Shown: positions 4,516 to 63,660 of the stretch, piece after piece
Numbering within the stretch: position 1 is the stretch's first letter
Layout: every line of letters starts with the position of its first letter
NCBI RefSeq assembly: GCF_006345805.1
Contig: NC_043002.1
Coordinates: 96,286,001-96,350,000, forward strand
Length of the DNA: 64,000 nucleotides
Reading direction: 5' to 3'
DNA from: Octopus sinensis
Taxonomy: Eukaryota
Made by a program: the position numbers and the translations under genes
The notes under the pieces: generated by a model
Databases searched by the model: none
What the model saw: the letters and a program-made list of their open reading frames with translations, nothing else
What the model was told of the DNA's origin: nothing

Positions 4516-4598
4516 GTGATCTTGCACATTATGATGAGGATGGACATTTTTACATCACAGATCGGTTGAAGGAGCTCATCAAATATAAAGGCTTTCAG
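4516..4598 (+). CDS. Upstream paralog (copy A), exon equivalent to exon 9
   Basis: 83 nt identical to 59396..59478 with the same splice sites. Confidence 0.9.
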
Positions 4599-4987
4599 GT
4601 AACTGCATTATTCTTGTTATTAAAGACATGGACATAGTTATGTGGTTAAGAAGTGTTTCTTCAGAACAGTGTGTTTTAGCATGTGTTTCCGCTGAGTGGC
4701 ATTATCAATAGATGTTTGTTACTATGGTCTTTGGCTGATAAATACTGTGTGCAAAGAATTGGCAAGCAGAAACTGTAAGAAACCTGTTGCATGTGCACAC
4801 GCACGTGTGTATGTGTGACTGTCTAATTGAGACACATTTGTTCTCTTCTGTAGTTTTTTTTGTTTTTGTGTATCTTCATCTGTCCTATCTGTAGAGAGCA
4901 TAGGCTCAAAATGTTAAAGGATTCTAATTTTCCTGATTGCCAACCTCATATACCCTGTTTGTTTTCTCACTTTTTGTCTTTTTGTAC

Positions 4988-5031
<44 letters not shown>

Positions 5032-5050
5032 TGAATAGATGGACATACAT

Positions 5051-5102
<52 letters not shown>

Positions 5103-5273
5103 CAAATAAGAAAATGGAGAAACAAATTCAGTTTGTTTATCAACTTACGGATATTACAATGTTACATTATTTATTCATTTTGCAAACAAAATATTATATA
5201 AATCAATAGGTAATATAACAATACAAATACAGATTTTAAAAGTCATATTATAAATCATTGAAATTCATAAACT

Positions 5274-5411
5274 ATTTCTTACAGCTGTTTCAGCCTATGG
5301 TCAAAAGTTAATCCAACTTACATTGCCTATAGATGTCAACATATTAGGGTTGTAGGCATTTAAAAAATATAATACTTATATGTTAAAAGAACCATAGGTC
5401 TCGTCAGAGGA
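5274..5411 (-). ncRNA. Type I hammerhead-ribozyme-like motif (Penelope type)
   Basis: Minus strand: CUGACGA, stem II CCUAUGGU/ACCAUAGG, GAAA, palindromic ACAGCUGU, triplet GUA. Stem I is weak and imperfect. Confidence 0.55.
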
Positions 5412-5520
5412 TATAATTAACTTGAAAAATATAATAATAATATTAATATACTATACATGCTGCACTTATTATCTAATATATACAAATAAATAATAAACAA
5501 ATACTCAAAAATACATACAT

Positions 5521-6660
5521 ATACATAAGAGAAATAACCTCTATTAAGTAATTCAATTGAGAGTGAAAGATATCTATATCAAATCATATAGAAAAAATTT
5601 AAATATATTTTAATAAATATTATTTTAAAAATCACTAAATTAAATAAACATTAAATTGGCTACGTGGTTTTGGGACTATATCTTTAAATCAATGATAATA
5701 ATATCGATACTATTAAAATTAATTTGATTTAAAAATATAGCCACTCTTCAGGTCTAAAATAATAAAATAATTGCATGTATCTTAACATATAATAATTAAC
5801 AAATAAATATAGAAACATGTATCGTAACAATGAATATTCGAATAAAATGTAACAATATTAATGAAAAATAATATCAGTATGTTTTAACATGTGTTTCCAC
5901 TGAGTGACATTATCAATAGATGTTAACTGGTATTCTTCAATAAGATAAGTTATGATTTTATTTTTCATTAATTTTGTTACATTTTATTCAATTATTTATT
6001 GTTACAATACATATATTTCTATATTAATTTTTAATTCTTATACATCAGCGTTGCTTGGGTTTGTTTTGACCCTTTAGAATTGGAATTTTTGAAAAGTAAA
6101 AATTTTGCATTATGTAGCTTGTTATTCTCTTTAAGTGAACATTTTACTGGTTGAAATACACTGACAAATGGCAACACAGCAGTCAAAAAATTGTAAAAAA
6201 TAGGGATTTCCATAGAAAAAAAGCACCTTTTTGATGTGGATAATTTTTGGTCCTAACATGCTCTGATTTGAATTTTTTTCTTCTACGGAATGAAGAGCAA
6301 GCCTTCTTCTATCATACTCTCAATTTAGGTCAACTAATGGTCTTGGAGGAGATAGTGTTAGTTAAAGGCTACCAAACCTGCCACACACAGACGACTTCAG
6401 CTTTATATATATGTATATATTTTAGACCTAAAGAGTGGCTATATTTTTCAATCGAATTAATTTTAATAGTATCGATTTTATTATTACCGATTTCAAGATA
6501 TAGTCACGATACGTTCATAGTCAATTTAATGTTTATTAAGTTTAGTGATTTTTAGAATAATATTTATTATAATATATTAAAATTTTTTCTACATGATTTA
6601 ATATAAATAATATCTTTCACTCTCAATTGAATTACTTAAAAGAGGTTATTTCACTTAATT
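5521..6660. repeat. Imperfect inverted repeat, arms ~5521..5760 and ~6419..6660
   Basis: GAAATAACCTCTATTAAGTAATTCAATTGAGAGTGAAAGATA vs TATCTTTCACTCTCAATTGAATTACTTAAAAGAGGTTATTTC; CCACTCTTCAGGTCTAAAAT vs ATTTTAGACCTAAAGAGTGG. Confidence 0.85.
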
Positions 6661-6759
6661 ATATACATATATTATATATTGTGAAATTTGATTTAGAATT
6701 GCTAAATTGAATGTTTCACTGTACGTTTGGAATTTTATATTCCCTACTATTATTAATTA

Positions 6760-6791
6760 TATATATATATATATAGAGACATGCATACTTG

Positions 6792-6826
<35 letters not shown>

Positions 6827-6844
6827 AGACATGCATACATGTAT

Positions 6845-6875
<31 letters not shown>

Positions 6876-7124
6876 GACATGCATACATGTGTATATATAT
6901 ATATATAATATATATATATATAAACATGCATACATACATGTATGTATATATATATTATATATATATATATATATATAAACATAAATACATGTGTGTATAT
7001 ATATATATATATAATATATATATATATTATATATATATATAAACATAAATACATGTGTGTATATATATATATATATATATAAACATAAATACATGTGTGT
7101 ATATATATATATATATATAGACAT

Positions 7125-7158
<34 letters not shown>

Positions 7159-7235
7159 AGACATACATACATGTTATATATATATATATATATATAGACA
7201 TACATACATGTATATATATATATATATATAGACAT

Positions 7236-7286
<51 letters not shown>

Positions 7287-7330
7287 TATATATCTAATTA
7301 CATGCATGCACATACGCACACTATATATAT
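6760..7330. repeat. Compound (TA)n-based minisatellite with recurring ACATACATACATGT-like spacers
   Basis: Repeated units of ~25-35 bp: (TA)n + GACATACATACATGT or AACATAAATACATGTG. Confidence 0.9.
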
Positions 7331-7836
7331 ATATTTACATGTTGTGTATTGCATTTGAATGCTCATCAAAAATAAACTCACAATCTATACAAATGATATC
7401 TTTGATTACAATCTACTTTGAAAATATGTCCAGCCATTGAGCTGTTTGTTTCTCAAAGGGACCAGAGGAAATATTACTTTGCTTGAAGACAGGTGAGGGC
7501 TGATGACCGAAAGAGCATCAAGCCACAGAATGTCTACCTTAACAAAGTTTCATCTGACTGATGAAAGTATAGGACAGTGGATATTATGAGGTTGTCGAAG
7601 GTGGCTGCATCAGTAATGGCAAGGAGGAGGAGGAGGCAGATATTTCAAGAATTACTTTCCAAGTTTTCTTCAAGTTTAACCATTAATTCTAAAATTGCAA
7701 TTATGATTAATGGATTTTGTTCTAATTTATTCTCATGTTCTTTTTAGATTTGCATGCATTCTTGAGATAAGTTAGGCTTCTTTTTTTAAATAAACATAAA
7801 TTTAAATACTCTTATTTAATTTCTTTATTCCGCTAG

Positions 7837-8002
7837 GTGGCTCCAGCTGAATTAGAAGCTCTACTAATTACACATCCTGATATTAAAGACTGTGCTGTGA
7901 TAGGTATCCCAGATGAGAAAGCTGGAGAATTACCTCGAGCTTATGTTGTCAGTAACGATAAAAGCACCATACGTGAGGAAGATGTTTTGAATTTCACTAA
8001 AG
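7837..8002 (+). CDS. Copy A exon equivalent to exon 10 ([10 protein letters not shown]...LNFTK)
   Basis: 166 nt, four nucleotide differences from 60420..60585; splice sites intact. Confidence 0.9.
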
Positions 8003-8524
8003 GTTTACATTTTGCTTACATTTTATAATTTATATTTGGTTTCATTAAACAAATGGAAAATAAGGAGTTAAAATTAGAGGAGATACTTAATGATTTAGAA
8101 AATACTGAAATCATTATAAGAATCTACTCCACTTCATCTTCAAGGCATGCATAAGTTTCTCCACTCTACTCTTTCACATACAAAAACTGGATGCAGGCAG
8201 AACTGTGTAGTTTACAGTTATATGGCTTGTTAGGCTAATCCCATTGTGCAGCGTCTTGAATAATTGTTATCTATAATCTGTCTGTTAAAAGAACCATTTC
8301 ATTTATGGTACTAGTTTTAATAATTGACTTATTTAATATCACCTGACCTTTCAAAGCTTTAATGAAGTGTATAGTATTGCAAGATTTTGAACATTTTCTC
8401 CTTCTAAGATTATCTTCTTCCTTTCCATCAATCTCAGAGATCTTTAAAAACGTCATAAATGTTGGTTGCTCTTCTTTTGATTAAGTGATAAAATGAATGA
8501 AAGTTTTTTTTAAATATGCACAAT

Positions 8525-8792
8525 TGTGAGTGGATTTGGTAGACGGAAACTGAAAGAAGCCTGTTGTATATATGTATGTGTGTGTATATGTTTGTGTGTC
8601 TGTGTTTGTCCCCCCAACATCGCTTGACAACCGATGGTGGTGTGTTTACGTCCCCATAAATTAGTAGTTTGACAAAAAAGACCGATAGAATAAGTACTAG
8701 GCTTACAAAGAATAAGTCCTGGGGTCAGTTTGCTCATCTAAAGGTGGTGCTCCGGCATGGCCACAGTCTAATGACTGAAACAAGTAAAAGAG
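8525..8792 (+). mobile_element. 5'-truncated tRNA-derived SINE (Octopus OK/OR-like family); duplicated at ~61125..61410
   Basis: Reverse complement of the 3' part of the copies at 24376 and 25415. Confidence 0.7.
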
Positions 8793-10912
8793 AGTAAATT
8801 TTTGTGTGCAAGTTTTCACTCATTTATGCTGCTCTATTCTCAGTGGCTCACTATTCATGTCTCTTCTACCACTACTATTTGAACAGTGGAACCTGGTGCT
8901 GCTTCTCAATTTGGCACGTAAAAAGCACTCACTACACTCTTGGAGTGGTTGGTGTTAGGAAGGGCATCCAGCCTTTGAAGCCATACCAAATTAGATCGGA
9001 ACCTGGTGCAGATCCCCAGCTCATCAGTTATCAATCAAACCATCCAACCCATGCCAGCGACAATGATGATGATGTTTGCTGAACATTACTCTCCCTAGCT
9101 CACTCAAACTATGTGTCTTCCTTTGCTCCCACCTTTAAGCAATTTTAAATAATTTAATGTCTTTTCCCTTCCACAACTACAACTACTGGAATTTCTTAAG
9201 GCAGTGAGCTGGCAGAATCATCGGTATATTAGATAATAATGCTAAGCAAGATTTCTTCTGGCTCTTTATGTTCTGAGTTGAAATGCTGCTGTCAGCTTTG
9301 CCTTTCATTCTTTCAGGGTTGATGTAATAAACTTACCCCTTTGCCCCAAAATTGCTGGCATATGCCAAAATTAGACTTCATTGTAAGAAAGTCAAAATCT
9401 TCTATAGACAAGGTCCCTCTTTCTCAAATGAAGCTTCTTCATAAATTTAAACACTAAAATTGTTTCTAAACATACATACGCCATTAGTTTATGGCTAATT
9501 TCATAATAAACGGAGCATGTGAAATGTGAAAAATAACAATACAAAATTCACCATTCAGTTCTGTCCATGTAAACCATTGATTTAATAGTTGTGCACTTGA
9601 TTCAATTCCAGTAAAGTTTATTTTTGTGTTTTGTCAGACTCTACTAAGAATTTTGGATTTTCATTTTAGTAGATAAAATTTGAATTAGTAATACAGGTAT
9701 ATTCATTTAATCTTTGACCTGGTTTCTGTATCTTAGACAAGGCAAGAAAGTGAGAATTGTTTGTTGCTATTTTACCCCAGTTCATAAGTGATTAAGTAGA
9801 CTTATAGTCTATTACCATCCTATGTTTATTTCAGGCATCATGTATTTCACACTGTGACCCAATGTGGTATCAGTTATCAGTTTCTGTAACATAGTAGTAT
9901 GAGATTTAAGGAAAATTTAGTTGCTATTTCTAACAGTTGAGCACCCATATAAAGACTCTTTTATTGATTTGAGATAGATTTAGAAATGTATTATGGTAAA
10001 AATGATGCTCATAGCCATGTACAGAAGAATTAAATTTTTAAGAATCAACATTAAACGCCTGAACATATTGTGTCAGTTTGCTAAGTTGTGTCACACAAAA
10101 GTAGTCATCTGCTACATGGTAGACATCCATTGAATAAATGCATAAATTGATTACACAATTTGACACAATGCCATAGATTAGTAAAGGAGATATATGTAGG
10201 TAATTAGGTCACCCACAGTTAATGCCTGCTACCGTGCCTTCTTGAAGGATAGGGAGACTGGGCAGTTGCTCACAGTGAGAGATAGTCCAGAGCCTCTGTC
10301 TGTCATGGTTGACTATTTATCTGCATCTCTATGTGCAGGCCTTTACAAGGTTGTTTCTTTCTTTCTAGTGGGAGACTAGCAGGTGTCTGTGTATGCAAGT
10401 CACTTTTCTTTGCCCTCATGTTGTTCAAGGGAAAGGCATTTTTTTAAAAACGAATGCAGCTTGGCATTAGAATCATCAAACATATTGCTATCAGAACACA
10501 AGAAACCAGTACAAAGACTGCAAAGCAGTTCATCTGACACTCAAACAGTTCTACCAATTCATTTTATTGGACTGACAAAATGATATTTTTTGTGATGCTG
10601 AATGGATGAAAAGCAAAGCTGACCATGGATTTTAATTCAGAGCACAAAGAGAGTTGAAACAAATACCATAAGGCATTCTATCTTTAAACCTCAAAAGACT
10701 TTGTCGGTTTGTGGCCTTGAGAGGTACTCCATTTATTAATTGGGCACCATTATATTAGTTTTCAAAGATGACTTTAAATTGTCCCATGGTATCGAAAAAC
10801 AAAAGGAAACCAATCTAGATTTCTTATTTTTAATAAAATTTAGACAAAAATGTCAGTAGTATCTTAATAATGTTCCTTTCTGTTTTCTCTCTTCTTTTTT
10901 CTTTATATTCAG

Positions 10913-11040
10913 CTAATGTTGCTCCATACAAGCAGCTCCGAGGAGGTGTGGAATTTGTACCTGAAATTCCAAAATCAGCAGCTGGGAAAATACTACGTAG
11001 AATTTTGCGAGATTCTTATAAAAATAAGCTTAATGACTGA
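10913..11040 (+). CDS. Copy A terminal exon ([30 protein letters not shown]...NKLND*)
   Basis: Two nucleotide differences from 63533..63660; TGA at 11038-11040. Confidence 0.9.
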
Positions 11041-13964
11041 TGGTAAACCTTATATTTTTCTTGATTAATTACAATGAGATGCCTTCAAAAATCATCTCTA
11101 TCTTATTCAAATTATAATTCAGTTACATATTTCAGAAGACCGAAACAAAAACAAGAAATATATATATATATGTGGGCTAAAACACACACAAAAGAATTTC
11201 ATTCACTAAATTCTTTTTACTATTTCTACTATTTCTTAGGTTTTAATCATTGAACTCTTTTTTTTTTTTTTAAATATCTTTCAACATATTTTTTGATGTA
11301 GTTATAATCAACTTGATTTCAATTTTTTTTATATAACAAAAAATTGTGTACATTTGATTATAATTTTAGAATGATAGCTACATGTTTAGTATTAAGCCAC
11401 AATGTCAAGTTAAATATTAAGCATTCCAGTGACTCCATCAGAATTCTCGCAAACATTCGTTTCTGAATTAAGGTTGAGAAATGTCTGCATGTTGTCACTT
11501 TATATTTTATTACATTTTATTATACAGACAGTACAGTAACATTATTAAAAATATTTATGTCATACCCATTTCCTTACAGTGGCCAATTCATATGAACATC
11601 ATTCCAACGTATTTTTAAAATATGTTTTATTTGTTTACACAAAGCTCAAGAATTGCTTGACCACATTTCATAAGTAATTATTATTCACTGATAACAATCC
11701 TCAGCAGTATTCACTTCAATGTTTTTGTAGTGGGGATTATTTTCAATGAAACAGTGCTTTCTGATAAGTCACTTTCACTAAGGACCATTTAAAACACTGC
11801 ATATAGCTAGATTTGATTTATAAACTGGTAGATTTCAAATTTCTCTTGAATAAAAATGATACAGCAAATTATTACTAAAAAAGGTAGTATAATTGTAGTC
11901 TTAAAATACCAAATTATTTGAAGTGAAGAAAGCTGTTTAAATTCAAGATAATATTCTGCTTTTCTACATTGAAACAATTATTTTATTATAAATCTTATTC
12001 TATCAATAGTTGTGAATCATTTACGGTGTTTTGTTTGCTCAAAGCAAATTAAATTTTTTCTATATAATTTATACTCAGTTGCTTTTTAAAATATTGCTGA
12101 AAAAGTTTGCTAATGAAATACATTTTAATTTTTACTAACAAATTACATAATTAGAAAACTTTTACATGTGTTATTAGTAATCGATTTTTTAAGGTGGCGA
12201 ACTGGTAGGATTGTTCGCACACCAGATGCAATGCTTAGTGATATTTCATCCGTCTCTACATTCTGAGTTCAAATTCTGCCGAGTTGAACTTTACATCCTT
12301 TCAGGATCGATAAAATAAGTACCAGTTTATCACTGTAGTTGATGTAATTGACTAGCTCCAACCCCTCAAAATTGCTTATAGGTCTTATATCTTTAGTAGA
12401 AAGGATTATTGACTTTGCCTTTCATCCTTTTAAGGCCAATAAAATAATGTATGTGTCAAATGCTGGGTTGATGAAATCAACTTACCCACTCCCCTAAAAT
12501 TCCTGGCTTTGTGTCAAAATTTGAAAGATTTAGGGGCAGGGGAGATGGTGTTTTCAGGATTATAAAAACATTTCTATATTTCATTTTGCTAAATTATTCA
12601 ACAGTAGAATTGCAAAACTGGCAAAATAACAACCAATATGCCTTACTGTATTTAGGTTCTTACCTTTAAAATCTATGGTCAAATCCCTCCAATGTCAACT
12701 TTGTCTTTCATTCTTCTAAGGTCAATAGAATAAGTATCAGTCAAGTATCTAATCTATTATATACATCCCACAAATTTGAGGCCTTGGGTGTATGCTGGAA
12801 ATCCATAATATTCCCATTCAAGATTTTTTATTGCTTTTGTATTGCAATAAATATAGTCTCTCAAGCCTCAGAAAGACAGTTCTGCAACTTTTTGCTGAAC
12901 AATCTGCACGGATGATTTGTTGATAGTGACTAAATATTTGTGCTGTACTCACTCTATCAAGTCAACATTGCTTGTACAGGTTCACAGTGTACTACATATC
13001 AGATATCAAGATGATTGCTTTTGTATTATAACTGCCTTAATGTGTGTTAGAATTGGGGCTTAAATAGACTGGACTAACTTTTAGTCATACATTTTTATAT
13101 AGATGCAATATTTTTACCAACTATTTATAATGGGTTTAAATAACAGTCCGATTTTCATAATTCATTACATCCACGATTCTGCATACAGGAAACCTCATAC
13201 AGAGATAATTTACAAGAATGTAGTTCAGTAATATAACACTTTGAATTGTTTACATATCTGAAGATAAGTGTTCTTTTGAAACGAGATCTGTATTACATAC
13301 TCTTGTAGCCTGTAGGCATGCCTAGAACTCAGTATTTTTGTGTTCATAATTGTAAAGAAAGAATAAATGGGTTTATACAAAAAAGAAAAACGTCTCTAAT
13401 TTTCTTTCTTAATCTATTTTGCTGTTTCCTTCTGATGTATAATAGTTTAATTTTAGCACTTTAGAACACCAAACTGCCTGAGTCGATATGGGAAACTCCA
13501 CATGGTGGGCCAACCTGCAAGAAATAGCAGGCAATTCTTTCTCAAATCACACCTGATCAATGACACTGAGTAGGGTCATAGGTACACAATGATTCATGAT
13601 GTTCACAAAAGTCATTGCTTATAGGTCTAATCTGGGGTTAAACTATAACAATAACCAGACTGTCATTTTCCTTGGTATTTTGATACTCCATTACTAAGTA
13701 TTTCTATTATACATTCTACTGTAACTTCAAGATCTTTACTAATATCATCCAGATGAGCTGAGAATTCATAATTCTTCATTCAAGAAACTGATGACTTTAT
13801 CTAGACAATCAGTGCAATGCATCTTTATTTGGTGTGTTATTTTTCTGGGTTTTGATTACTAATATTTTGTTACAGTATTATTAAGCTGATAGTTTGAACA
13901 AGACCTATTGAGTCAAGTACGTCAACACCAACATCAAAATAATAATCAAATGGAAATTGTAGTC

Positions 13965-25606: not shown

Positions 25607-25650
<44 letters not shown>

Positions 25651-47568: not shown

Positions 47569-47632
<64 letters not shown>

Positions 47633-49023: not shown

Positions 49024-49054
<31 letters not shown>

Positions 49055-52000: not shown

Positions 52001-55000
52001 ACGGAATGGTCTGCATACTGTTTAGTATTATTACAAGTGGGTGTTCAATATACACTTTACCAAAATTTGAACCAGAAATTTTCTTATCTACGTTAAGCAA
52101 AAATAGGGTAAGGAAATTTGCATAATCATTTTTAATGATTTTTTTTTATTCAAAATAATTTCATGACATTATTAAACATTTCATAAAATGATATTCAAAT
52201 GGAATAAAAATATAGGATTAAAGGAATGCCCTAACTTAATTTATTTCTAAATAGAGGTTGTGAGATGGCAAGCCTGTTAGGGTTCAGACAAAATAACAAT
52301 CCAGCCACATGAATTGACAGAATCATTAGAGTATCAGACAAAATGCTTTGTGGTATTTGTGCCAGCTATTTGTATTCTGAGTTCAAATCTTACATGTATG
52401 GTAGATTTAATCTGGTTTTCAGTTTAACACCATCATCAGGTTCTTGCAAGCAATCAGAGCAGGTCTCCTGTTTGAAGTGTCCATTTTTTATTCCACCCTC
52501 TCATCAATCTCAGTGGCCTTATAAAAAAGTCATAGAGACTCTATCCCTCTTGACTAAGCTTTAAAAATAGTATAAATCAATTTAACAGTAAACGTATGAA
52601 TTAACTCATAACCCCTAAATATTCTATATGTAGTTACACTTTGACCACATAACTTGTAGGGTAGATGAAAGAATGAAAGGGCCTATACACAATTACTTAT
52701 CTTAACAGAAGTAGCAGCTGAATCTCCCTCAAGTCATAGCTATTTGAAAAATAAACAAAAAGGCAAAATAAGAATCACATAGTGGACAATAGAGATGTTA
52801 TGTATGTAAAGATGGAATGGTACAGTTGGAATGTCTGTGATCATAAGTTTACTCAAGCAGAGCTGACCACATCATTTTTAGATAAAAAAAAAAGTGCTGA
52901 TGTGTTGAACAATATTTCTTTTTAACTGTTATTAATCCACTGCTGAATGAAGGCCCCAACATGCTTTTGCTAACTTGTCTTTACTGGTTGTGAGCTTTAA
53001 AAAAAACAAACTATATAATAAATGATTGCAAGAACCACAGAAGTTCTTAAAGCTGGTGTTTGGGTCTAAATTCTATAACTCTAAACCAATGAATGCTTGA
53101 TTATAGGGGTGTTAATCTGTCAAAAGTAACAGTAAAATTTCTACAGATAAATGAACTGAGGCATATAAAACTAACTTGCTCAGGATATAGTGAAATGTTT
53201 GCTTGGACAGTAACTCTAACTTGTCACACAGTTTAACACATCGACCTCCATTTTGGGAGGTTCACTGTGTAACAAACAAGACTCTGGTGTAAGAATGACT
53301 TAATACCATTATGTGCTGCCTCCCCACTGCATATTATTTTGTGTAGAGTCACTTTTTGTTAGAGTACCAGTGTCAGTAATCTTCAGAATGTTACTCATGG
53401 GGTTAGGTTCTTGTGTATCTGGCTTGCTGCTGAAGAGCCTCACCTCATGAGTAACACTTCAAGAAATTGCCTTTTTTGCTGACAGACTCACTTGCACCTA
53501 TGTCTTCTTACAGGGATAGAAATAATGATCGGCAGCAATCCATGAATTATAGTAGTTTCCCCCTTTTTTCTTCAACAGTTTTGAAGATCCTGCAGCTGTT
53601 TTGATTTTTTGCGCCCTTTTTCCTTTAACTTACCCATAAAAAATAATATAAATTATGAACAAGAATCAGTAATTCAATACTTTATCTACTTTGCCATTCC
53701 AAGACTTTTGCAGTGTTTTGACAATCCAATAAGTTTTTTTACAAAATTTTAAATTCATAAGTTTTCTGTCATAAAAATTCTGTATAAATAATGTCTCTAT
53801 CAATTAATTTATTTTGTTTCTATGTTACAGATAACCTGTGCACACTTGGTTCCTCCATTGATCTTGTTTTTGGCTAAACACCCTCTTGTAGAAGATCACG
53901 ATCTCTCTGCAATCAGAAGAATATTTTCAGGAGCTGCTCCACTTGGTAAAGAACTTCTGTTAGAATGTAAGGAAAGACTTGGTGTTCAAGAAATGATCCA
54001 AGGTAAATGATTTATTATAATTAATCTTTTTTTTTGTGGCAGAAAGGATGTAAATGCAGTAGCAGTGAATTTAAGGTGTTATCCTACTGACCATGTGGCT
54101 CTAAATTTGAGTTTTGCTGTTATGCTCATTATAGTTTGTCTTTCTAACAAAGATCTTGTTTCTGCATTCTATGTCTGTCTGTCAACTAATACTGTGCAAT
54201 TAACAACTGAGAGACAGTGAAAGACATATATGCTACCATGGCTTGAACTGGAATTGATTTTGAGGCATGGTTTTACAGTTGGATACTCTACATGTCACTA
54301 ATTTCACCTATTTCTCAGAATATATTGATACAAATTTACTGAAAAGCATCACACTACAATTTGATTCCCCCCCCCCATCACCTCAAAATGGCAATCGCAT
54401 ATCGATATATATATATATTTTATGATATATAAATAAAATCAGCAAAAAGTGACTTTACCATGAGGAGTGAAAGACCCAACATTTCTGACAGAATCCTTCT
54501 TCAGGAGAGAAATTAATAAGACACAGCAGAGTTTTACTTCTTCTAAGTTAGAAAACCCTCCCCCTCCTCCCCACTGCTGTTTACTTTTCTCTGAAGATGG
54601 ACTCTCAAGTCCACTGCACCCTTTTTGTTGAATTCTCTAAATAATACAGACAAACACCAATCTCTTTTGATTGTATATTTTTTATGTAATTATGTCTGAA
54701 ATAATGCTACAATTATCTAATGTTCAAGTTATACATCTTAACTCAGTGTGTCAGTTTTGGTGTGAATTCTGTTGCAGGATTCCCTTCATTACATCAACCA
54801 GAGTGGGCCAGGTGCATTTCTTTTCATTGCACTAGAACTGTAGAGATTATCTTGTACTTGGCGAAACTAAATAATCCTCTCAACCCTGTTTTGTTACTGT
54901 TTGATTTGTTAATAACTTCATAAAGTTTACTGAGTGCTTTTCTTGTGGCACCAGTACTAGAGAGGTTGCTGTGTAACTCACAAGGCCATATCTAAATGAG

Positions 55001-55757
55001 TATAGATTAAAGGATAGTAAAAGAAACGGATTTGTTGTTGTGAGAGGATAGTATTGGAGAGAAAAAAACTGTTGGAAGGATAAATAATTGAGGAGACAGA
55101 GTGGAGTCTGGAGTTACTATGAAAGAAAGGGAGAGAGTGGTAAGGTTGATAGAGAGTGTTGGTTAGGAAGCACCCAGTGCTCTTTCATATTATATGTATC
55201 ATATCATTGTCATCATCATTATCATTGTCATCATCATCATTTTATGTCCACTTTTATGTGTAGATAATTGTTTGCTCCATATTTATTGTTCTGCAATAGG
55301 CTATGGTCTGACTGAAACAAGCCCTGTTGTTCATTTGAGTGTACCACCAATTCGTCACGAAGGTTCTGTTGGAACTTTGATACCTAATACTGCTGCAAAG
55401 GTAAATATCTCTTTCTCTTTAGAATTACAACTGCTTTAAAATATAACAAACCAAATTTATAAATGTTTTAGTTATTAAACATTTCCATCTAAATATTGTG
55501 TATTAGATTTTGTTAGCTAGCCGTCTGTCCATCCATCCATACATATGTACATACATACATGCATACATACACACATACATACTTACAGACAGACAGGCAT
55601 GCATGTATATAATGTTTTTTTCCTTACTCCTCTACCATCACATCTATGCTCTGATCCTTGTTATCTGTGAGAATACCCTGAAGAAGTCAGAAAGACCATG
55701 GTGGTGCTCCAGCATGACCACAGCTGCATGACTGAAACAAGTAAAAGAGAAAAAGAG

Positions 55758-56152: not shown

Positions 56153-59100
56153 CTTTTTTGTGGTTTAACATGGCAACCATTGGCTTCATGTGGAAGAGAT
56201 CTCCACAATTGTTTAAGCAAACCACTTGGAAATGTTGATACTTGTCTCCAAAATAGAAAGAGAGTGAGTGTGAGACACACACACACACACACACACACGC
56301 AGAGTTAATTTTGTATAAATGATGTTGAATGTCTTTGTATCTTTGCTAGATAATTGATCCTGAAACAAACGAAATCTTAGGCCCAATGCAAACGGGGGAG
56401 ATATGTATCAAAGGTCCACAAGTAATGAAAGGCTATTTACACCGACCAGAAGCTACTGCTGATATGATCAGAGATGGCTGGTTGTATTCAGGTAGGGTTT
56501 TAATAAATGTTGATAAATATTCCTATCTCCACAGCTTTTCAATCATCTCACCTCCCACCCTCTCATTTTCCCCCATCTCCTCTTTACAGATCCATAACTC
56601 CCCTCACTTATTTCTCTTGCTGCTGCTTCCTCTCACATCTTCCACCTGTACCCACCTTTATAATGTGCGCTGTCACTGGATCCCTACTTACATAACCCCC
56701 TTCTTGCCAACACCTGATACTAATCCTTTTCTCCTGTGCCTCATCTAGTCCTCCCTGCTATCATGTCCACCCTCTTACTTTCTCCATCACTACACTGGTG
56801 GTGGTTTGTGTAATATGACTTAATAAAAATTTTTGTATATGTACAGGTATGGCTGTATGATAAGAAGTTTTTTTCCCAACCACATGATCCCAAGTTCAGT
56901 TCAACTGTGTGGTGCCTTGGGCAAGTGTCTTCTATTATAGCTCCAGGCCAGCCAAAGCCCTTTGAATGGAGTTGTGAGACAGAAACTGAAAGAAACGTGC
57001 TGTGTGTGTGTACATACACACACCATATATATATATATATATATATATCAAAGTATCAATTAGAGACAGAACCTCCCCTTATATACAACCCCAATCTTCA
57101 GGTCCACCTATCCACCGTTTATAACTTTATCTATCATTATATATTCCAACTTAAAAGTATGTCAAACTAAACCGATGTATAAATAAATTCCTAGTATGTC
57201 AAAACATATAGATGTGTAAATAATTTCATTGAACCCAGCAGTTTAAGACATAATTAATTAACAATTAAGAATTAAATGTAAGTTACGCCTAAAAGAATAT
57301 ATATAAATGAAAGATATATATGAATGCAGAAAAAAATATACTAATGAGAAGAAAATATAACATTATAAGAGATATATATATCAAAATGAAGAGGACGATT
57401 AAGAGACGAATGGAAACTAATACGAATAACAAAAATTCAGGTGAATATTACACGTAAAATACGAATGAAGATATGGAAAAAAAATATATATGGAAAAACA
57501 TTTAAAAATGAAAAAATTATATATATGGGAATTAATTTATAAATTAATATAATTAGAATTAATATAGTAAACTTATTTTAAAATGTAAAAGTTAAAATGT
57601 AAAAGAATATTTTCCTTCTACCCCTGGATATCATGGCGCTAAATTGAACTAGTTCCAATTTACACTGCAAGGTTCTGTAAAAGTATTTATACTCATACAC
57701 ACCATCAGTTTCTTTTAAACTATTATGTTATTAGTATATTACTGACAGTGGGACAGGAAATAAATGCATTATGGGAACAATTCATCCTTTCTTTCATTTT
57801 TATTCACCCACCCTCCAACCACCAAACAACCATTATTCCCCAACTCAAATGGTAAGTTAAATTTAAATAATAGTATCTAATAATAATTTCTAACAATTAA
57901 TTTATGTTTATTTGCTTGAGGGTTAGATTTTATTAATTAACCACTTCAGTTTGTGTTTACATTTAATCTTTCTTTCATCCTGTGCATTAAGTAGTTTACT
58001 TTTTGCCCATAATATCTCCATGAATTCATGGGTACACAACAAACAAAGTCTATTCCCAATTCTATACGATTTGGTTTTACTTATTATTTCCCACTTAATT
58101 TTATATTTAATTCCTTTCAATTTTAAACTTCAGATGTATTTACTCAAACCTGTCGAGTTCATTAATTTCTTATTTTTCAATGAATTCATATGCTGTGCTA
58201 TTCATTGTTTAATATTATTCGATGTTGAACCAATATATGTTCTCTCTGAAATTCTTTCAATATTTATATTATTATTATTTATTTCTCTCTTATCATTCTT
58301 ATTTTCGTTTACAGAAACCACACATTTATATACTACATCAGTTAAATTACATCTACCTTTAAATTTTACAGTGATTTTTATCCCTACAATTGCAATTTTT
58401 AAGTCTCTAGCCTTATTATTAGGATACCTATTTAATTTATCATGGTAATATTTATTCAACTTATGTTTATTAAGTGATGAAATAATGTTCTCTACGTTGT
58501 TGGTAGTAGAATATCCCACTTCTATATTATTTTTAGAGAATAAGTCCATATATTTTTTGTTTTCTATAATAAAGGATTCTATAGTTTTAGTTATTACTGT
58601 TATAATATTACTTTTAACTTGAATCCCATAAGAGACTATCAATCATATTGATTTATTTTTAATTGTGTTTATATTATTATTCTTTGTATCTTTATTTACG
58701 CAATTTTTGTTATTATCATCTTTATTATTTACTAGCAGTATCGCCCGGCGTTGCTCAGGTTTGTAAGGGAAATAACTATAAAGCATTTTGAGAGAGTTAT
58801 AGCCAAAAAATAGCAAAAAAATGGAAAAAAAATGATGGTAAATTTTTTTGAGAGTAAAAAAGGTGGAGTTGCGTCCCCTAGACAGTTTGCGGTTTGTGTT
58901 TCTGATTCTCGACCCCATGACGAATTTATCGATTTTTTTCAGAACTGGGGGAACTTTTCAAAATTTTCGCTGCGTTAGTTTTGAATTATGACATTGGGCT
59001 ATGTGTGTGTCAAGTTTCATCAGAATCGGTTGAAAGCCGTGGTCAGGGTGAGGGTACAAGCAAACAGACACACAGAAACATGCACAGACAAACTGCCGTT

Positions 59101-62100
59101 TATATAGAGAGAGATAATTGGGTCTAAATTATACTTTTCGTTTAATCTTAAATATTTCTCCATTATTCCTATTCTTCTTCCCTTCGATTTTAATTCAATG
59201 TACACTTAGATATTTTTCAAAAATAGCTTTAAAATCCTATATATATATATATATATATATATAATGAAATGTCATTTGAATTTATAATCTAAATTTTATT
59301 TTAACAACAACATAAATGTCTGGAAGACAACAAAAAAGATAAGTTATACAAAATTAATCCATTTATATGTCCATTGCTGTTACTTTAAACTATAGGTGAT
59401 CTTGCACATTATGATGAGGATGGACATTTTTACATCACAGATCGGTTGAAGGAGCTCATCAAATATAAAGGCTTTCAGGTAACTGCATTATTCTTGTTAT
59501 TAAAGACATGGACATAGTTATGTGGTTAAGAAGTGTTTCTTCAGAACGGTGTGTTTTAGTATGTGTTTCCACTGAGTGGCATTATCAATAGATGTTTGCT
59601 ACTATGGTCTTGGGCTGATAAATACTGTGTGAAAAGAATTGGCAAACAGAAACTGTAAGAAACCTGTTGCATGTGCACATGCACGTGTGTAAGTGTGACT
59701 GTCTAATTGAGACACATTTGTTCTCTTCTGTAGTTTTTTTTTGTTTTTGTGTATCTTCATCTGTCCTATCTGTAGAGAGCATAGGCTCAAAATGTTAAAG
59801 GCTTCTAATTTTCCTGACTGCCAACCTCATATACTCTGTTTGATTTCTCACTTTTTTGTCTTTTTGTACGTTATATATCTATCTATCTATATATACATGC
59901 GAGCACACACACTATATATACATGTGTGTGTGTGTGTATTGCATTTGAATGCTCATCAAAAATAATCTCACAATCTATACAAATGATATCTTTGATTACA
60001 ATCTACTTTGAAAATATGTCCAGCCATTGACCTGTTTGTTTCTCAAAGGGACCAGAGGAAATATTACTTTGCTTGAAGACAGGTGAGGGCTGATGACCGA
60101 AAGAGCATCAAGCCACAGAATGTCTACCTTAACAAAGTTTCATCTGACTGATGAAAGTATAGGACAGTGGATATTATGAGGTTGTCGAAGGTGGCTGCAT
60201 CAGCAGTGGCAAAGAGGAGGAGGAAGAGGATATTTCAAGAATTACTTTCCAAGTTTTCTTCAAGTTTTACTATTTATTAAAATTTACAATTATAATTAAT
60301 GGATTTTGTTCTAATTTATTCTCATGTTCTTTTTAGATTTGCATGCATTCTTGAGATAAGTTAGGCTTCTTTTTTTAAATAAACATAAATACTCTTATTT
60401 AATTTCTTTATTCCGCTAGGTGCCTCCAGCTGAATTAGAAGCTCTACTAATTACACATCCTGATATTAAAGACTGTGCTGTGATAGGTATCCCAGATGAG
60501 AAAGCTGGAGAATTACCTCGAGCTTATGTTGTCTGTAACGATAAAAGCACCATACGTGAGGAAGATGTTTTGAATTTCGTTAAAGGTATACATTTTACTT
60601 AAATTTTATAATTTATGTTTGCTTTCATTAAACAAATGGAAAATAAGGAGTTAAAATTAGAGGAGATACTTAATGATTTAGAAAATACTGAAATCATTAT
60701 AAGAATCTACTCCACTTCATCTTCAAGGCATGCATAAGTTTCTCCACTCTACTCTTTCACATACAAAAACTGGATGCAGGCAGAACTGTGTAGTTTACAA
60801 TTATATGGCTTGTTAGGCTAATCCCATTGTGCAGCGTCTTGAATAATTGTTATCTATAATAGCTTCAAGATTACAAAATCTGTCTGTTAAAAGAACCATT
60901 TCATTTATGGTACTAGTTTTAATAATTGACTTATTTAATATCACCTGACCTTTCAAAGCTTTAATGAAGTGTATAGTATTGCAAGATTTTGAACATTTTC
61001 TCCTTCTAAGATTATCTTCTTCCTTTCCATCAATCTCAGAGATCTTTAAAAACGTCATAAATGTTGGTTGCTCTTCTTTTGATTAAGTGATAAAATGAAT
61101 GAAAGTTTTTTTTAAATATGCACAATTGTGAGTGGATTTGGTAGACAGAAACTGAAAGAAGCCTGTCGTATATATGTATTTGTATATATGTATGTGTGTG
61201 TATATGTTTGTGTGTCTGTGTTTGTCCCCCCCAACATTGCTTGACAACCGATGGTGGTGTGTTTACGTCCCCATAAATTAGTAGTTTGACAAAAAAGACC
61301 GATAGAATAAGTACTAGGCTTACAAAGAATAAGTCCTGGGGTCAGTTTGCTCATCTAAAGGTGGTGCTCCGGCATGGCCACAGTCTAATGACTGAAACAA
61401 GTAAAAGAGAGTAAATTTTTGTGTGCAAGTTTTCACTCATTTATGCTGCTCTATTCTCAGTGGCTCACTATTCATGTCTCTTCTACCACTACTATTTGAA
61501 CAGTGGAACCTGGTGCTGCTTCTCAATTTGGCACGTAAAAAGCACTCACTACACTCTTGGAGTGGTTGGTGTTAGGAAGGGCATCCAGCCTTTGAAGCCA
61601 TACCAAATTAGATCGGAACCTGGTGCAGATCCCCAGCTCATCAGTTATCAATCAAACCATCCAACCCATGCCAGCGACAATGATGATGATGTTTGCTGAA
61701 CATTACTCTCCCTAGCTCACTCAAACTATGTGTCTTCCTTTGCTCCCACCTTTAAGCAATTTTAAATAATTTAATGTCTTTTCCCTTCCACAACTACAAC
61801 TACTGGAATTTCTTAAGGCAGTGAGCTGGCAGAATCATCGGTATATTAGATAATAATGCTAAGCAAGATTTCTTCTGGCTCTTTATGTTCTGAGTTGAAA
61901 TGCTGCTGTCAGCTTTGCCTTTCATTCTTTCAGGGTTGATGTAATAAACTTACCCCTTTGCCCCAAAATTGCTGGCATATGCCAAAATTAGACTTCATTG
62001 TAAGAAAGTCAAAATCTTCTATAGACAAGGTCCCTCTTTCTCAAATGAAGCTTCTTCATAAATTTAAACACTAAAATTGTTTCTAAACATACATACGCCA

Positions 62101-63660
62101 TTAGTTTATGGCTAATTTCATAATAAACGGAGCATGTGAAATGTGAAAAATAACAATACAAAATTCACCATTCAGTTCTGTCCATGTAAACCATTGATTT
62201 AATAGTTGTGCACTTGATTCAATTCCAGTAAAGTTTATTTTTGTGTTTTGTCAGACTCTACTAAGAATTTTGGATTTTCATTTTAGTAGATAAAATTTGA
62301 ATTAGTAATACAGGTATATTCATTTAATCTTTGACCTGGTTTCTGTATCTTAGACAAGGCAAGAAAGTGAGAATTGTTTGTTGCTATTTTACCCCAGTTC
62401 ATAAGTGATTAAGTAGACTTATAGTCTATTACCATCCTATGTTTATTTCAGGCATCATGTATTTCACACTGTGACCCAATGTGGTATCAGTTATCAGTTT
62501 CTGTAACATAGTAGTATGAGATTTAAGGAAAATTTAGTTGCTATTTCTAACAGTTGAGCACCCATATAAAGACTCTTTTATTGATTTGAGATAGATTTAG
62601 AAATGTATTATGGTAAAAATGATGCTCATAGCCATGTACAGAAGAATTAAGTTTTTAAGAATCAACATTAAACGCCTGAACATATTGTGTCAGTTTACTA
62701 AGTTGTGTCACACAAAAGTAGTCATCTGCTACATGGTAGACATCCATTGAATAAATGCATAAATTGATTACACAATTTGACACAATGCCATAGATTAGTA
62801 AAGGAGATATATGTAGGTAATTAGGTCACCCACAGTTAATGCCTGCTACCGTGCCTTCTTGAAGCATAGGGAGACTGGGCAGTTGCTCACAGTGAGAGAT
62901 AGTCCAGAGCCTCTGTCTGTCATGGTTGACTATTTATCTGCATCTCTATGTGCAGGCCTTTACAAGGTTGTTTCTTTCTTTCTAGTGGGAGACTAGCAGG
63001 TGTCTGTGTATGCAAGTCACTTTTCTTTGCCCTCATGTTGTTCAAGGGAAAGGCATTTTTTTAAAAACGAATGCAGCTTGGCATTAGAATCATCAAACAT
63101 ATTGCTATCAGAACACAAGAAACCAGTACAAAGACTGCAAAGCAGTTCATCTGACACTCAAACAGTTCTACCAATTCATTTTATTGGACTGACAAAATGA
63201 TATTTTTTGTGATGCTGAATGGATGAAAAGCAAAGCTGACCATGGATTTTAATTCAGAGCACAAAGAGAGTTGAAACAAATACCATAAGGCATTCTATCT
63301 TTAAACCTCAAAAGACTTTGTCGGTTTGTGGCCTTGAGAGGTACTCCATTTATTAATTGGGCACCGTTATATTAGTTTTCAAAGATGACTTTAAATTGTC
63401 CCATGGTATTGAAAAACAAAAGGAAACCAATCTAGATTTCTTATTTTTAATGATAAAATTTAGACAAAAATGTCAGTAGTATCTTAATAATGTTCCTTTC
63501 TGATTTCTCTCTTTTTTTTTCTTTATATTCAGCTAATGTTGCTCCATACAAGCAGCTCCGAGGAGGTGTGGAATTAGTATCTGAAATTCCAAAATCAGCA
63601 GCTGGGAAAATACTACGTAGAATTTTGCGAGATTCTTATAAAAATAAGCTTAATGACTGA
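38495..63660 (+). CDS. Luciferase-like / 4-coumarate:CoA ligase-like acyl-CoA synthetase, complete spliced CDS (copy B), 11 coding exons, 592 aa. join(38495..38791,41592..41799,45115..45227,50481..50683,51942..52107,53831..54002,55300..55400,56350..56491,59396..59478,60420..60585,63533..63660)
   Basis: Manual exon assembly gives 1779 nt with an open frame, all introns GT-AG and matching phases. ANL-family motifs occur in order: [13 protein letters not shown] (AMP-binding loop), [68 protein letters not shown] (catalytic Lys). Confidence 0.93.
40502..40700 (-). mobile_element. 3' end of a Tc1/mariner (DD37D/maT-like) transposon
   Basis: Minus strand reads [19 protein letters not shown], then an AT-rich UTR and TA-CAGG terminus. 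Confidence 0.5.
41592..41799 (+). CDS. Copy B coding exon 2 ([14 protein letters not shown]...MNSAYSA)
   Basis: cag|GAA acceptor, A|gtatgg donor; contains the family-typical [18 protein letters not shown]. Confidence 0.9.
42055..42270 (+). mobile_element. Second tRNA-derived SINE family; copies also at ~9197-9380, 12190-12410, 41835-41970, 42565-42775, 42865-43000, 52250-52400
   Basis: Shared GGTGGCAAGCTGGCAGAA...TTCTGAGTTCAAAT...CAACTTTGCCTTTCATCCTTT...AGTACCAG. Confidence 0.75.
45115..45227 (+). CDS. Copy B coding exon 3 ([18 protein letters not shown]...VKLK)
   Basis: gtag|AG acceptor and AAG|gtctgt donor; phase 1 in and phase 0 out match the neighbouring exons. This exon is not in the ORF track. 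Confidence 0.85.
49500..50420 (-). mobile_element. Highly decayed CR1/Jockey-like LINE RT fragment
   Basis: Minus strand [19 protein letters not shown] resembles the PxPK...NYRPI RT-start motif. Confidence 0.4.
50481..50683 (+). CDS. Copy B coding exon 4 (AMP-binding motif [17 protein letters not shown])
   Basis: ccag|GAA acceptor, AC|gtgagt donor; signature motif present. Confidence 0.95.
51942..52107 (+). CDS. Copy B coding exon 5 (LPFYHIYG...LPKFEPE)
   Basis: gcag|T acceptor, AGG|gtaagg donor; substrate-pocket motif. Confidence 0.93.
53831..54002 (+). CDS. Copy B coding exon 6 ([12 protein letters not shown]...SGAAPLG)
   Basis: acag|ATA acceptor, G|gtaaat donor. Confidence 0.93.
55300..55400 (+). 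CDS. Copy B coding exon 7 (GYGLTETS...PNTAAK)
   Basis: atag|GC acceptor, AAG|gtaaat donor; YGLTE motif. Confidence 0.93.
56350..56491 (+). CDS. Copy B coding exon 8 (IIDPET...[14 protein letters not shown]...GWLYS)
   Basis: ctag|ATA acceptor, G|gtaggg donor; box II-like GEICIKG. Confidence 0.93.
57900..59210 (-). mobile_element. Penelope-like element GIY-YIG endonuclease/C-terminal remnant, interrupted by a Helentron-like element
   Basis: [17 protein letters not shown], frameshifted NCNCR...[29 protein letters not shown]...CLLC...KCKHK, typical of PLE C-termini. Confidence 0.75.
58731..59115 (+). mobile_element. Helentron/DINE-1-like non-autonomous element
   Basis: ACTAGCAGTATCGCCCGGCGTTGCTCAGG...ACAGACAAACTGCCGTTTATATAGAGAGAGAT. 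Confidence 0.6.
59396..59478 (+). CDS. Copy B coding exon 9 ([28 protein letters not shown])
   Basis: atag|GT acceptor, CAG|gtaact donor; hinge motif. Confidence 0.93.
60420..60585 (+). CDS. Copy B coding exon 10 ([10 protein letters not shown]...LNFVK)
   Basis: ctag|GTG acceptor, G|gtatac donor. Confidence 0.93.
63533..63660 (+). CDS. Copy B terminal coding exon 11 ([13 protein letters not shown]...[18 protein letters not shown])
   Basis: Long pyrimidine tract with cag|CT acceptor; TGA at 63658-63660. Confidence 0.92.

Follow-up and report, generated by a model that had tools for sequence, protein, structure and literature searches.

The window, a 64,000-nucleotide stretch of Octopus sinensis DNA analysed over its whole length (chromosome CM016864.1:96286001-96350000), very probably covers a head-to-tail segmental duplication of two genes, a reading to which a probability of about 85% is assigned. 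Under this reading, the genes (A, upstream, and B, downstream) encode intact 592-aa ANL enzymes of the 4CL/luciferase-like type, which would be acyl-CoA synthetases and not luciferases, and the duplication occurred after the split of Octopus and Argonauta. Both genes are already annotated in RefSeq, and they are best seen as an ordinary acyl-CoA synthetase pair. A reading made earlier from the sequence alone had taken the genome to be cephalopod-like, as is the case for O. sinensis, and had described the locus as a tandem array of luciferase-like enzymes from whose lineage cephalopod luciferases might have been recruited.

Structure of genes A and B

Gene B lies on the + strand at 38495-63660 and has 11 exons with GT-AG introns throughout. 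Its spliced exon model gives an ORF of 1779 nt (592 codons plus stop), the translation of which is identical to RefSeq XP_029637772.1 (P0124), named '4-coumarate--CoA ligase 2'. The one intact 592-aa ANL enzyme of the sequence-only reading was thus reproduced exactly as a gene model, with PF00501 and PF13193 both present.

The same reading had placed the 3' exons of a second copy 53-55 kb upstream in the same orientation. A tblastn search with the exon peptides of gene B recovered exons 9-11 a second time on the + strand, at 4512-4598, 7837-8004 and 10915-11037 (100%, 94.6% and 95.1% amino-acid identity, respectively), and refinement of the edges to splice sites gave 4516-4598, 7837-8002 and 10913-11040. 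The offsets between the gene A exons and their gene B counterparts are 54.9 kb and 52.6 kb, in agreement with that placement. These exons belong to a full-length upstream paralog, XP_036360069.1 (P0001, '4-coumarate--CoA ligase 2-like'), of which the window holds exons 9-11, carrying exactly the five C-terminal substitutions of that protein. Exons 1-8 precede the window, from -22573 to -1820 in its numbering, and lie in an overlapping locus (L001) that matches the window base for base where the two coincide. Gene A there has 11 exons with the same lengths as those of gene B and with GT-AG introns throughout, and the translation of its assembled CDS equals P0001 exactly. The ends of the stretch singled out by the earlier reading, 4516 and 63660, coincide with the opening base of gene A exon 9 and the final base of the gene B stop codon. 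The '4-coumarate--CoA ligase 2' and '2-like' names on the two RefSeq proteins are automatic.

Features of the window, numbered from its first base, are as follows:

4516-4598, + strand: gene A exon 9; 100% identical in nucleotides to its gene B counterpart, AG/GT boundaries
5016-7287, no strand: insertion of 2.3 kb that sets intron 9 of gene A apart from that of gene B, seen as a break in the A/B alignment
7837-8002, + strand: gene A exon 10; 97.6% identical in nucleotides to its gene B counterpart, AG/GT boundaries, A-specific A497, S534 and T549 as in P0001
10913-11040, + strand: gene A exon 11 and stop codon; 98.4% nucleotide identity to gene B exon 11
11041-16447, + strand: 3' flank of gene A, part of the duplication; its colinear partner runs from 63661 to past the window end
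16448-37786, no strand: spacer of ~21 kb not common to the two units, no colinear A/B match
37787-38494, + strand: duplicated 5' flank of gene B, putative promoter region, 95-98% identical to the sequence that precedes gene A exon 1
38495-38791, + strand: gene B exon 1; holds the start codon and encodes the N-terminal extension (65 residues) and the beginning of the ANL domain
41592-41799, + strand: gene B exon 2
45115-45227, + strand: gene B exon 3
50481-50683, + strand: gene B exon 4; P-loop motif (10 residues)
51942-52107, + strand: gene B exon 5
53831-54002, + strand: gene B exon 6
55300-55400, + strand: gene B exon 7; QGYGLTE motif crosses the exon 6/7 junction
56350-56491, + strand: gene B exon 8; GEICIKG, which corresponds to 'box II' of 4CL
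59396-59478, + strand: gene B exon 9; SGD and hinge (11 residues) motifs
60420-60585, + strand: gene B exon 10
63533-63660, + strand: gene B exon 11; PKSAAGK with the catalytic lysine, C-terminus ...KLND, stop

Extent and age of the duplication

The similarity of the two copies is far beyond chance. An alignment of the two that takes in introns runs for 4.1 kb with 97.4% of nucleotides identical, and across 106 kb of contiguous sequence the duplicated blocks are colinear at 86-98% identity, with indels. By blastn, blocks at 7287-14812, 14933-15968 and 15975-16447 match 59880-71621 at 94-97%. There are 34 differences in the 1779 nt of coding sequence and 19 in the 592 aa of protein (dS 0.033, dN 0.0155, dN/dS 0.47). 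The insertion in gene A intron 9 contains (TA)n arrays at 4992-5099 and 6758-7270, as detected with Tandem Repeats Finder. In the spacer, a reverse-transcriptase fragment was found at 19453-19836 on the minus strand (RVT_1, 1.8e-14) together with interspersed repeats; this fragment was the sole Pfam match among the longer spacer and intron ORFs, and ORFs 1568-2050, 1638-2024, 20013-20459, 25562-25951 and 31216-31605 matched no Pfam family. No Rfam family passed its gathering threshold anywhere in the window.

Near-identity that extends into introns, together with an identical exon structure in A and B, might also be produced by an uncollapsed haplotype assembled in tandem, and the sequence-only reading had itself flagged the second copy as a possible assembly artefact. 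However, the two copies and their spacer lie in 106 kb without one N, their intron lengths are unequal (gene A spans 33.6 kb and gene B 25.2 kb) and several indels separate them. Furthermore, an independent assembly of O. vulgaris (locus L005) holds the same two copies, with intact ORFs, conserved splice sites and a 27.5-kb spacer. O. vulgaris B differs from O. sinensis B by 5 aa and from O. sinensis A by 19 aa, and 21 informative sites support the grouping (A,A)(B,B) as opposed to 1 and 0 for the alternative groupings; such grouping by copy over species is not expected of alleles. On these grounds, a haplotig artefact was rejected as extremely improbable.

The two genes are thus colinear, in the same orientation, contiguous and present in an independent assembly and species, as expected of a tandem (segmental) duplication. 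Each duplicated unit measures ~34-41 kb, in which ~0.7-1.9 kb of 5' flank precedes the 11-exon gene and 5 kb or more of 3' flank follows it; ~21 kb of unshared, transposon-rich spacer lies between the units. No further copies were found within 10 kb upstream of gene A or 10 kb downstream of gene B. The count of copies in flanking sequence, which the earlier reading had proposed, therefore stands at two in 106 kb; its same-orientation tandem duplicate is real, although the term 'array' is overstated because only two copies are present. Likewise, of the proposed 'locally expanding cluster', one duplication older than the split of O. sinensis and O. vulgaris can be recognized, and nothing beyond it. 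The duplication would date from after the Octopus/Argonauta split and before that of the two Octopus species.

Fate of the two copies

In O. sinensis, derived substitutions are about evenly divided between A and B. In O. vulgaris, copy A has 27 private nucleotide changes compared with 4-7 in each of the other three sequences, which may mean that this species is in the course of losing it. Comparisons overall gave dN/dS values of ~0.4-0.57, whereas a housekeeping enzyme would normally show a ratio lower than 0.4-0.6. These values, the private changes in O. vulgaris A and the lack of a protein for copy A in the O. vulgaris annotation would fit a decaying, non-functional gene A, an incipient pseudogene that leaves gene B as the sole working gene. 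Against this, the 592-codon ORF, 20 of 20 splice sites and all catalytic motifs of copy A are kept in both species, dN/dS is below 1, the orthologous B-B comparison gives a similar ratio (0.44), and the derived changes in O. sinensis do not fall preferentially on A. The pseudogene reading is thus unlikely, and for O. sinensis copy A it was rejected on its intact ORF, splice sites and catalytic motifs. Under the preferred reading of two working genes, both copies would have been under moderately relaxed purifying selection since the duplication.

Orthologs of genes A and B are present in two Logan transcriptomes (SRR8281668 and SRR27666073), and an O. bimaculoides ortholog was absent from the homolog search matches. 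The O. vulgaris annotation fuses both copies into one 92.7-kb gene. A search of the literature on 4-coumarate enzymes in octopus found nothing relevant.

Placement in the ANL superfamily

Gene B contains the N-terminal AMP-binding domain (PF00501, 1.7e-88, residues 89-450) and the small C-terminal domain (PF13193, AMP-binding_C, 6.9e-18, residues 500-576) that together mark ANL enzymes. Core motifs were sought as the P-loop (S/T)SG(T/S)TGxPKG, YGxTE, (S/T)GD, the hinge D-R-x-K and the lysine in PKxxxGK; A and B both carry them, in 31 residues of motif sequence plus PKSAAGK. The best PDB matches are CG6178 (6e-119), Nt4CL2 and Pt4CL (~1e-117) and beetle luciferases (1e-91 to 1e-106). A neighbour-joining (NJ) tree with bootstrap, in which Photinus luciferase was the sole insect sequence and CG6178 was left out, united genes A and B with Photinus luciferase at 100% bootstrap as opposed to the wsluc clade and bacterial FACS sequences. 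The PDB ranking and this clade both place the pair in the 4CL/firefly-luciferase-like subfamily, and the assignment to adenylating enzymes of this kind made from the sequence alone is borne out by domains, structures, tree and motifs.

Relation to cephalopod and beetle luciferases

Watasenia wsluc1-3 are ANL proteins, and the closest characterised relative of wsluc1-4 is human ACSF2, with firefly luciferases at 19-21% (Gimenez et al. 2016, PMC4899746). The suggestion that the gene pair represents the lineage behind the Watasenia luciferases, or a local expansion of it, and may be luciferase-like or luciferin-activating, draws on this common superfamily membership, on the 35% identity of gene B to Photinus luciferase (E 3e-99) and on the lysines equivalent to K443 and K529 kept in gene B. 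However, wsluc2 and gene B are only 22% identical over 296 aa by BLASTP (E 6e-11) and 17.7% by global alignment, which is below the ~35% used to delimit the wsluc lineage and no closer than wsluc2 is to bacterial enzymes. The octopus homologs of wsluc2 are other genes, P0141-P0146 ('ACSF2-like'/'YngI-like'), which are 36-39% identical to it and lie on a 107-Mb chromosome, whereas that of the window measures 120 Mb. In the NJ phylogeny, which included wsluc and Photinus sequences as the earlier reading had recommended, the wsluc and gene A/B clades are separated with 100% bootstrap on each side. In addition, even the best PDB matches of wsluc2 are weak, reaching no better than 4e-21, and single out neither 4CL nor luciferase, and the altered core motifs YSSNEA and TDD of the wsluc clade are missing from genes A and B. 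The wsluc-lineage reading was rejected on the low identity, the separate clades and the location of the octopus homologs elsewhere, and is scarcely credible. The homology of Watasenia luciferase subunits to this family therefore holds at the level of the ANL superfamily and not closer, and a recruitment of cephalopod luciferases from the lineage of this locus was not upheld.

The link to beetle luciferases likewise holds only at the family level. Neither the clade position of genes A and B (one insect sequence sampled) nor their C-terminus, which lacks SKL, assigns them to the beetle luciferase lineage. As the sequence-only reading had conceded, there is no indication of light emission for genes A and B. 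O. sinensis is not known to be a luminous species.

Predicted function and localisation

By analogy with other ANL enzymes, genes A and B would catalyse a two-step reaction in which a carboxylic acid and ATP give an acyl-adenylate and pyrophosphate, after which the C-terminal domain would rotate and attack by CoA would yield acyl-CoA and AMP. The predicted substrates are most likely fatty or other aliphatic or aromatic carboxylic acids, and the enzymes would therefore be acyl-CoA synthetases, not luciferases.

The N-terminal 65 residues are basic and Ser/Thr-rich (8 K+R, 0 D+E, 17 S+T). Similar extensions occur across animal homologs, and bacterial homologs begin at the conserved I-x-R-S-P motif. 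A peroxisomal targeting signal (PTS1) is absent from the C-terminus of both proteins. The basic, acid-free composition of the extension and the absence of PTS1 suggest that the enzymes may be imported into mitochondria rather than peroxisomes. The alternative that genes A and B encode long-chain fatty acyl-CoA synthetases of the peroxisome, equivalent in function to CG6178, a non-luminous luciferase homolog, is encouraged by the rank of CG6178 among solved structures, but it is improbable given a C-terminus without a PTS1-like tripeptide where Photinus luciferase ends in SKL, the presequence-like extension conserved in animal members and the position of Photinus luciferase outside the A/B clade (92%) in a tree without CG6178.

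A further proposal is that the paralogs are diverging in function, one perhaps gaining a new small-molecule substrate, with the animal-wide clade representing an acid-activating enzyme of mitochondria that acts on something other than a common fatty acid. Some of the 19 amino-acid changes between A and B cluster at residues 275-278, immediately before the PFYHIYG segment. These changes and a dN/dS of ~0.5 would fit such divergence, and the animal-wide clade has the presequence and is ~48% identical to actinobacterial/chloroflexal enzymes. This proposal is nevertheless quite doubtful, and an ordinary acyl-CoA synthetase pair remains the preferred reading.

Significance

The importance of the locus beyond annotation is small. 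The name 'luciferin 4-monooxygenase / 4CL-like' does not tie octopus genes A and B to cephalopod bioluminescence, and the place to look for the origin of wsluc is among the octopus homologs on the other chromosome. As a point of annotation, the fused O. vulgaris gene model hides an intact upstream copy.

Comparison with known systems

With Watasenia scintillans wsluc1-4, genes A and B share the ANL superfamily and nothing closer. Photinus pyralis luciferase (1LCI/1BA3) belongs to the same broad subfamily, with 33-35% identity to gene B over ~490 residues, and is an outgroup to the animal and bacterial clade in which genes A and B fall (92% bootstrap). It is peroxisomal, ends in KSKL and has no N-terminal extension, whereas genes A and B end in KLND, have the extension and give no sign of oxygenase activity.

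With the plant 4CL enzymes (Nt4CL2, 5BSM; Pt4CL, 3A9U), the comparison concerns boxes I and II as defined in the 4CL literature. The 11 residues of 'box I' are identical in genes A and B, and 'box II' is GEICIRG in the plant enzymes versus GEICIKG in the octopus genes. Animals are not known to have a phenylpropanoid pathway, and the '4CL' name of the octopus genes should not be taken to assign a substrate. The best solved-structure match is Drosophila melanogaster CG6178 (PDB 7KYD, residues 78-588), a long-chain fatty-acyl-CoA synthetase that has the two-domain ANL fold family and the core motifs in common with genes A and B, which differ from it in their 65-residue N-terminal extension and in lacking PTS1.

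Gene structure of the tandem pair

The window is eukaryotic in character, with AT-rich DNA along its length (GC 26-43%) and no long bacterial-type ORFs in an ORF scan. On the forward strand, stop-to-stop ORFs between 38 and 64 kb carry every recognisable piece of an adenylating enzyme of the ANL superfamily (acyl-CoA synthetases, NRPS adenylation domains and luciferases). Refinement of exon limits to AG/GT sites gave the 11 exons of gene B, which spans 25.2 kb. The sequence-only reading had proposed an intact 592-residue ANL enzyme here, and the rebuilt ORF (1779 nt) comprises exactly 592 codons and a stop. Its product contains AMP-binding (Pfam, 1.7e-88) and AMP-binding_C (6.9e-18) domains and is identical to XP_029637772.1 across 592 of 592 residues.

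Exons of genes A and B (window positions, negative values upstream of the window; limits at AG/GT sites)
-22573 to -1820, +, gene A exons 1-8 (upstream of the window)
4516-4598, +, gene A exon 9
7837-8002, +, gene A exon 10
10913-11040, +, gene A exon 11
38495-38791, +, gene B exon 1
41592-41799, +, gene B exon 2
45115-45227, +, gene B exon 3
50481-50683, +, gene B exon 4
51942-52107, +, gene B exon 5
53831-54002, +, gene B exon 6
55300-55400, +, gene B exon 7
56350-56491, +, gene B exon 8
59396-59478, +, gene B exon 9
60420-60585, +, gene B exon 10
63533-63660, +, gene B exon 11

The 3' exons of a second copy in the same orientation, also noted from the sequence alone, were borne out to the base by tblastn of gene B exon peptides against the window and splice-site refinement. 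The last three exons matched on the forward strand at 4512-4598 (100% identity), 7837-8004 (94.6%) and 10915-11037 (95.1%). The top protein-search match to gene B was O. sinensis XP_036360069.1 (P0001; 97% identity, 19 positions differing), and its 90% cluster groups two proteins from O. sinensis with three isoforms from O. vulgaris. The three upstream exons inside the window translate to this protein, carrying its five C-terminal differences exactly (P497A, C534S, V549T, L565F and S567P). Its locus (L001; GCA_006345805.1, CM016864.1:96253427-96307040) matches the window's first 21,040 bases with zero mismatches, which places the window at CM016864.1:96286001-96350000, and holds all 11 exons of gene A, equal in length to those of gene B and all with AG/GT sites; the translation is XP_036360069.1 exactly. 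Since exons 1-8 lie to the left of the window, the upstream copy is not a fragment but a whole 33.6-kb gene that extends past the left boundary of the window. Both genes have RefSeq entries already.

Intron 9 of gene A contains a 2.3-kb insertion, absent from gene B, within which lie two (TA)n arrays at 4992-5099 (54 copies) and 6758-7270 (259 copies). These arrays produce spurious 'YIYIYI' ORFs at 6716-7319.

Extent and origin of the duplication

Joining L001, the window and the locus around gene B (L002) gave 106,234 bp in which no N bases occur. The duplicated unit starts roughly 0.7-1.9 kb before exon 1 and extends 5 kb or more past the stop codon. Blocks shared by the two units are colinear, 86-98.5% identical and broken by indels, and the units are separated by a spacer of about 21 kb not common to A and B.

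Duplicated units (colinear A/B blocks)
-24402 to 16447, +, unit A
37787 to 71621, +, unit B

The coding sequences differ at 34 of 1779 nucleotides (13 synonymous and 21 non-synonymous changes; dS 0.033, dN 0.0155, dN/dS 0.47). An assembly artefact could in principle produce such a second copy; the absence of N bases and the presence of both copies in an independent O. vulgaris assembly (L005; GCA_951406725.2, OX597819.1) speak against it. The O. vulgaris copies occupy L005 positions 18479-50077 (upstream) and 77572-102744, with 27.5 kb between them; in both, the 592-codon ORF is intact and the splice sites are kept. Among the four coding sequences, 21 sites favour (OsinA, OvulA)(OsinB, OvulB), compared with 1 and 0 for the other two arrangements. 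Hence the copies are paralogs predating the O. sinensis/O. vulgaris split rather than alleles or an uncollapsed haplotype. Both O. sinensis proteins and their O. vulgaris counterpart group together with 100% bootstrap support in the protein tree and the Argonauta homolog falls outside both copies, so the duplication happened inside the Octopus lineage. A further copy was found neither within 10 kb upstream of gene A nor within 10 kb downstream of gene B. Thus, the proposed tandem array is confined to two genes. The pair is a plain recent segmental duplication.

A reverse-transcriptase fragment (RVT_1, 1.8e-14), probably a decayed retroelement, lies in the unshared spacer and adjoins an ORF at 20013-20459. 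An interspersed repeat of 230-300 bp, whose copies are 73-88% identical to one another and probably represent a SINE-type element, occurs in introns and spacer. No Rfam matches were found in the window.

Repeats in the window
19453-19836, -, reverse-transcriptase fragment
61126-61417, +, 230-300-bp repeat, forward copy
3197-3496, 24378-24586, 25417-25688, 28816-29040 and 30274-30500, 230-300-bp repeat, inverted copies
56836-57048, second repeat

Evolution of the two copies

When polarised with Argonauta and two cephalopod transcripts, derived amino acid changes in O. sinensis are divided about equally between copy A (L278, V333, K374, V399, A497, T549 and P567) and copy B (M135, H352, I438, H451 and L565). 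Pairwise dN/dS among the four O. sinensis and O. vulgaris coding sequences is 0.41-0.57 (0.44 between the B orthologs, from only 10 changes), which gives no indication of strong positive selection; neither O. sinensis copy shows signs of decay. Copy A of O. vulgaris has 27 private nucleotide changes versus 4-7 in the other three sequences and may be under weaker constraint. The O. vulgaris annotation fuses both copies into one 92.7-kb gene, leaving copy A without a listed protein. A 7.7-kb tract from intron 2 to intron 4 (B 44205-51898) shows 98.45% A/B identity versus 86-96% elsewhere, a pattern compatible with gene conversion between the paralogs.

Protein family and probable targeting

The best solved-structure match in a PDB search was the Drosophila long-chain fatty-acyl-CoA synthetase CG6178 (6e-119), followed by tobacco and poplar 4-coumarate:CoA ligase (4CL; ~1e-117), beetle luciferases, one ancestral and several extant (1e-106 to 1e-91), and then bacterial FadD, oxalyl-CoA and malonyl-CoA synthetases. 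All ANL core motifs are kept in A and B ([24 protein letters not shown] or [21 protein letters not shown], PKSAAGK). From family membership, both enzymes would be expected to carry out the two-step ANL chemistry of adenylation followed by CoA thioesterification.

The family is widespread, with homologs at 45-52% identity in molluscs, annelids, echinoderms, hemichordates, amphioxus, corals and sponges. Orthologs are present in Argonauta and two cephalopod transcriptomes; none from O. bimaculoides was among the protein-search matches or in the 90% cluster, and it may be missing from the annotation or lost. Two proteins from Actinomycetota and Chloroflexota MAGs (P0106 and P0111) share 47-49% identity with the octopus enzyme. 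This puts them level with the homologs of sponges, corals or amphioxus, and they nest among animal sequences in the neighbour-joining tree with low support. Such closeness may reflect unusual conservation or, alternatively, an old transfer.

Almost all animal members have an N-terminal extension of 41-72 residues that is rich in K/R and S/T, with acidic residues scarce or absent; bacterial members begin directly at the conserved I-x-R-S-P motif. In A and B it is 65 residues long, with 8 K+R and 0 D+E; in gene B it is encoded at 38495-38689 (first 65 codons) and includes 17 S+T. An SKL-type C-terminal signal is absent from all animal members compared, A and B ending in KLND. This basic, Ser/Thr-rich, acid-poor composition and the lack of an SKL-type ending suggest a probable mitochondrial presequence.

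Intron 1 of gene B also contains a low-complexity ORF ([20 protein letters not shown]...) at 41263-41580 (+). The unusual N-terminal sequence of isoform CAI9723939 (P0122) from O. vulgaris matches it, probably because the annotation of that species includes a spurious alternative first exon.

Relation to beetle and cephalopod luciferases

It had been suggested that this cluster belongs to the lineage from which cephalopod luciferases were recruited. The query, Watasenia scintillans luciferase protein wsluc2, was taken from Supplementary Fig. S1 of Gimenez and colleagues (2016; PMC4899746) and, as transcribed, is 99% identical to W. scintillans UniRef A0A3S5I9Y4 (P0135). Those authors reported 19-21% identity between wsluc1-3 and firefly luciferases, human ACSF2 as the closest characterised protein, and O. 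bimaculoides proteins as the closest homologs (up to 40%) (PMC4899746). Our wsluc2 search matched O. bimaculoides 'YngI-like' proteins (36-38%), an O. sinensis 'ACSF2, mitochondrial-like' protein on a 107,269,306-bp contig (38%) and three O. vulgaris 'acyl-CoA synthetase' proteins on a 118,905,486-bp contig (38-39%). Genes A and B lie on different chromosomes from these homologs (120,472,873 bp in O. sinensis and 135,589,375 bp in O. vulgaris). The three O. vulgaris homologs share one chromosome (the octopus wsluc homologs P0143-P0146 lie outside the window), and any local expansion of the wsluc lineage is thus to be sought there.

A neighbour-joining tree of 35 sequences, built from 497 trimmed columns with 200 bootstraps, resolved two separate clades, 4CL-like and wsluc, with 100% support each. 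The former comprises A, B, other cephalopods, other animals, the two bacteria and Photinus luciferase; the latter contains the Watasenia proteins, squid-like transcripts and octopus ACSF2-like proteins. For the Watasenia link, the outcome named beforehand as refuting was therefore observed, gene B standing far from the wsluc clade. What had been seen in the sequence is fully upheld, and so is its reading as a cephalopod tandem of luciferase-like ANL genes, but their tie to the origin of cephalopod luciferases is unsupported; A and B belong to an animal-wide 4CL-like clade with a probable presequence.

Photinus luciferase (sequence identical to PDB 1BA3/1LCI) is 35% identical to gene B over 494 residues (E 3e-99) and falls inside the 4CL-like clade as outgroup (92%), without the N-terminal extension. 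The relation of A and B to beetle luciferases is genuine, yet at subfamily level only. Watasenia wsluc2, in contrast, is 22% identical to gene B over 296 residues (E 6e-11) and likewise 22% identical to Photinus luciferase; its PDB matches are weak (best 4e-21) and unspecific for 4CL or luciferase, and the altered core motifs (YSSNEA, TDD and IIKTDCC) are its own, A and B being without them.
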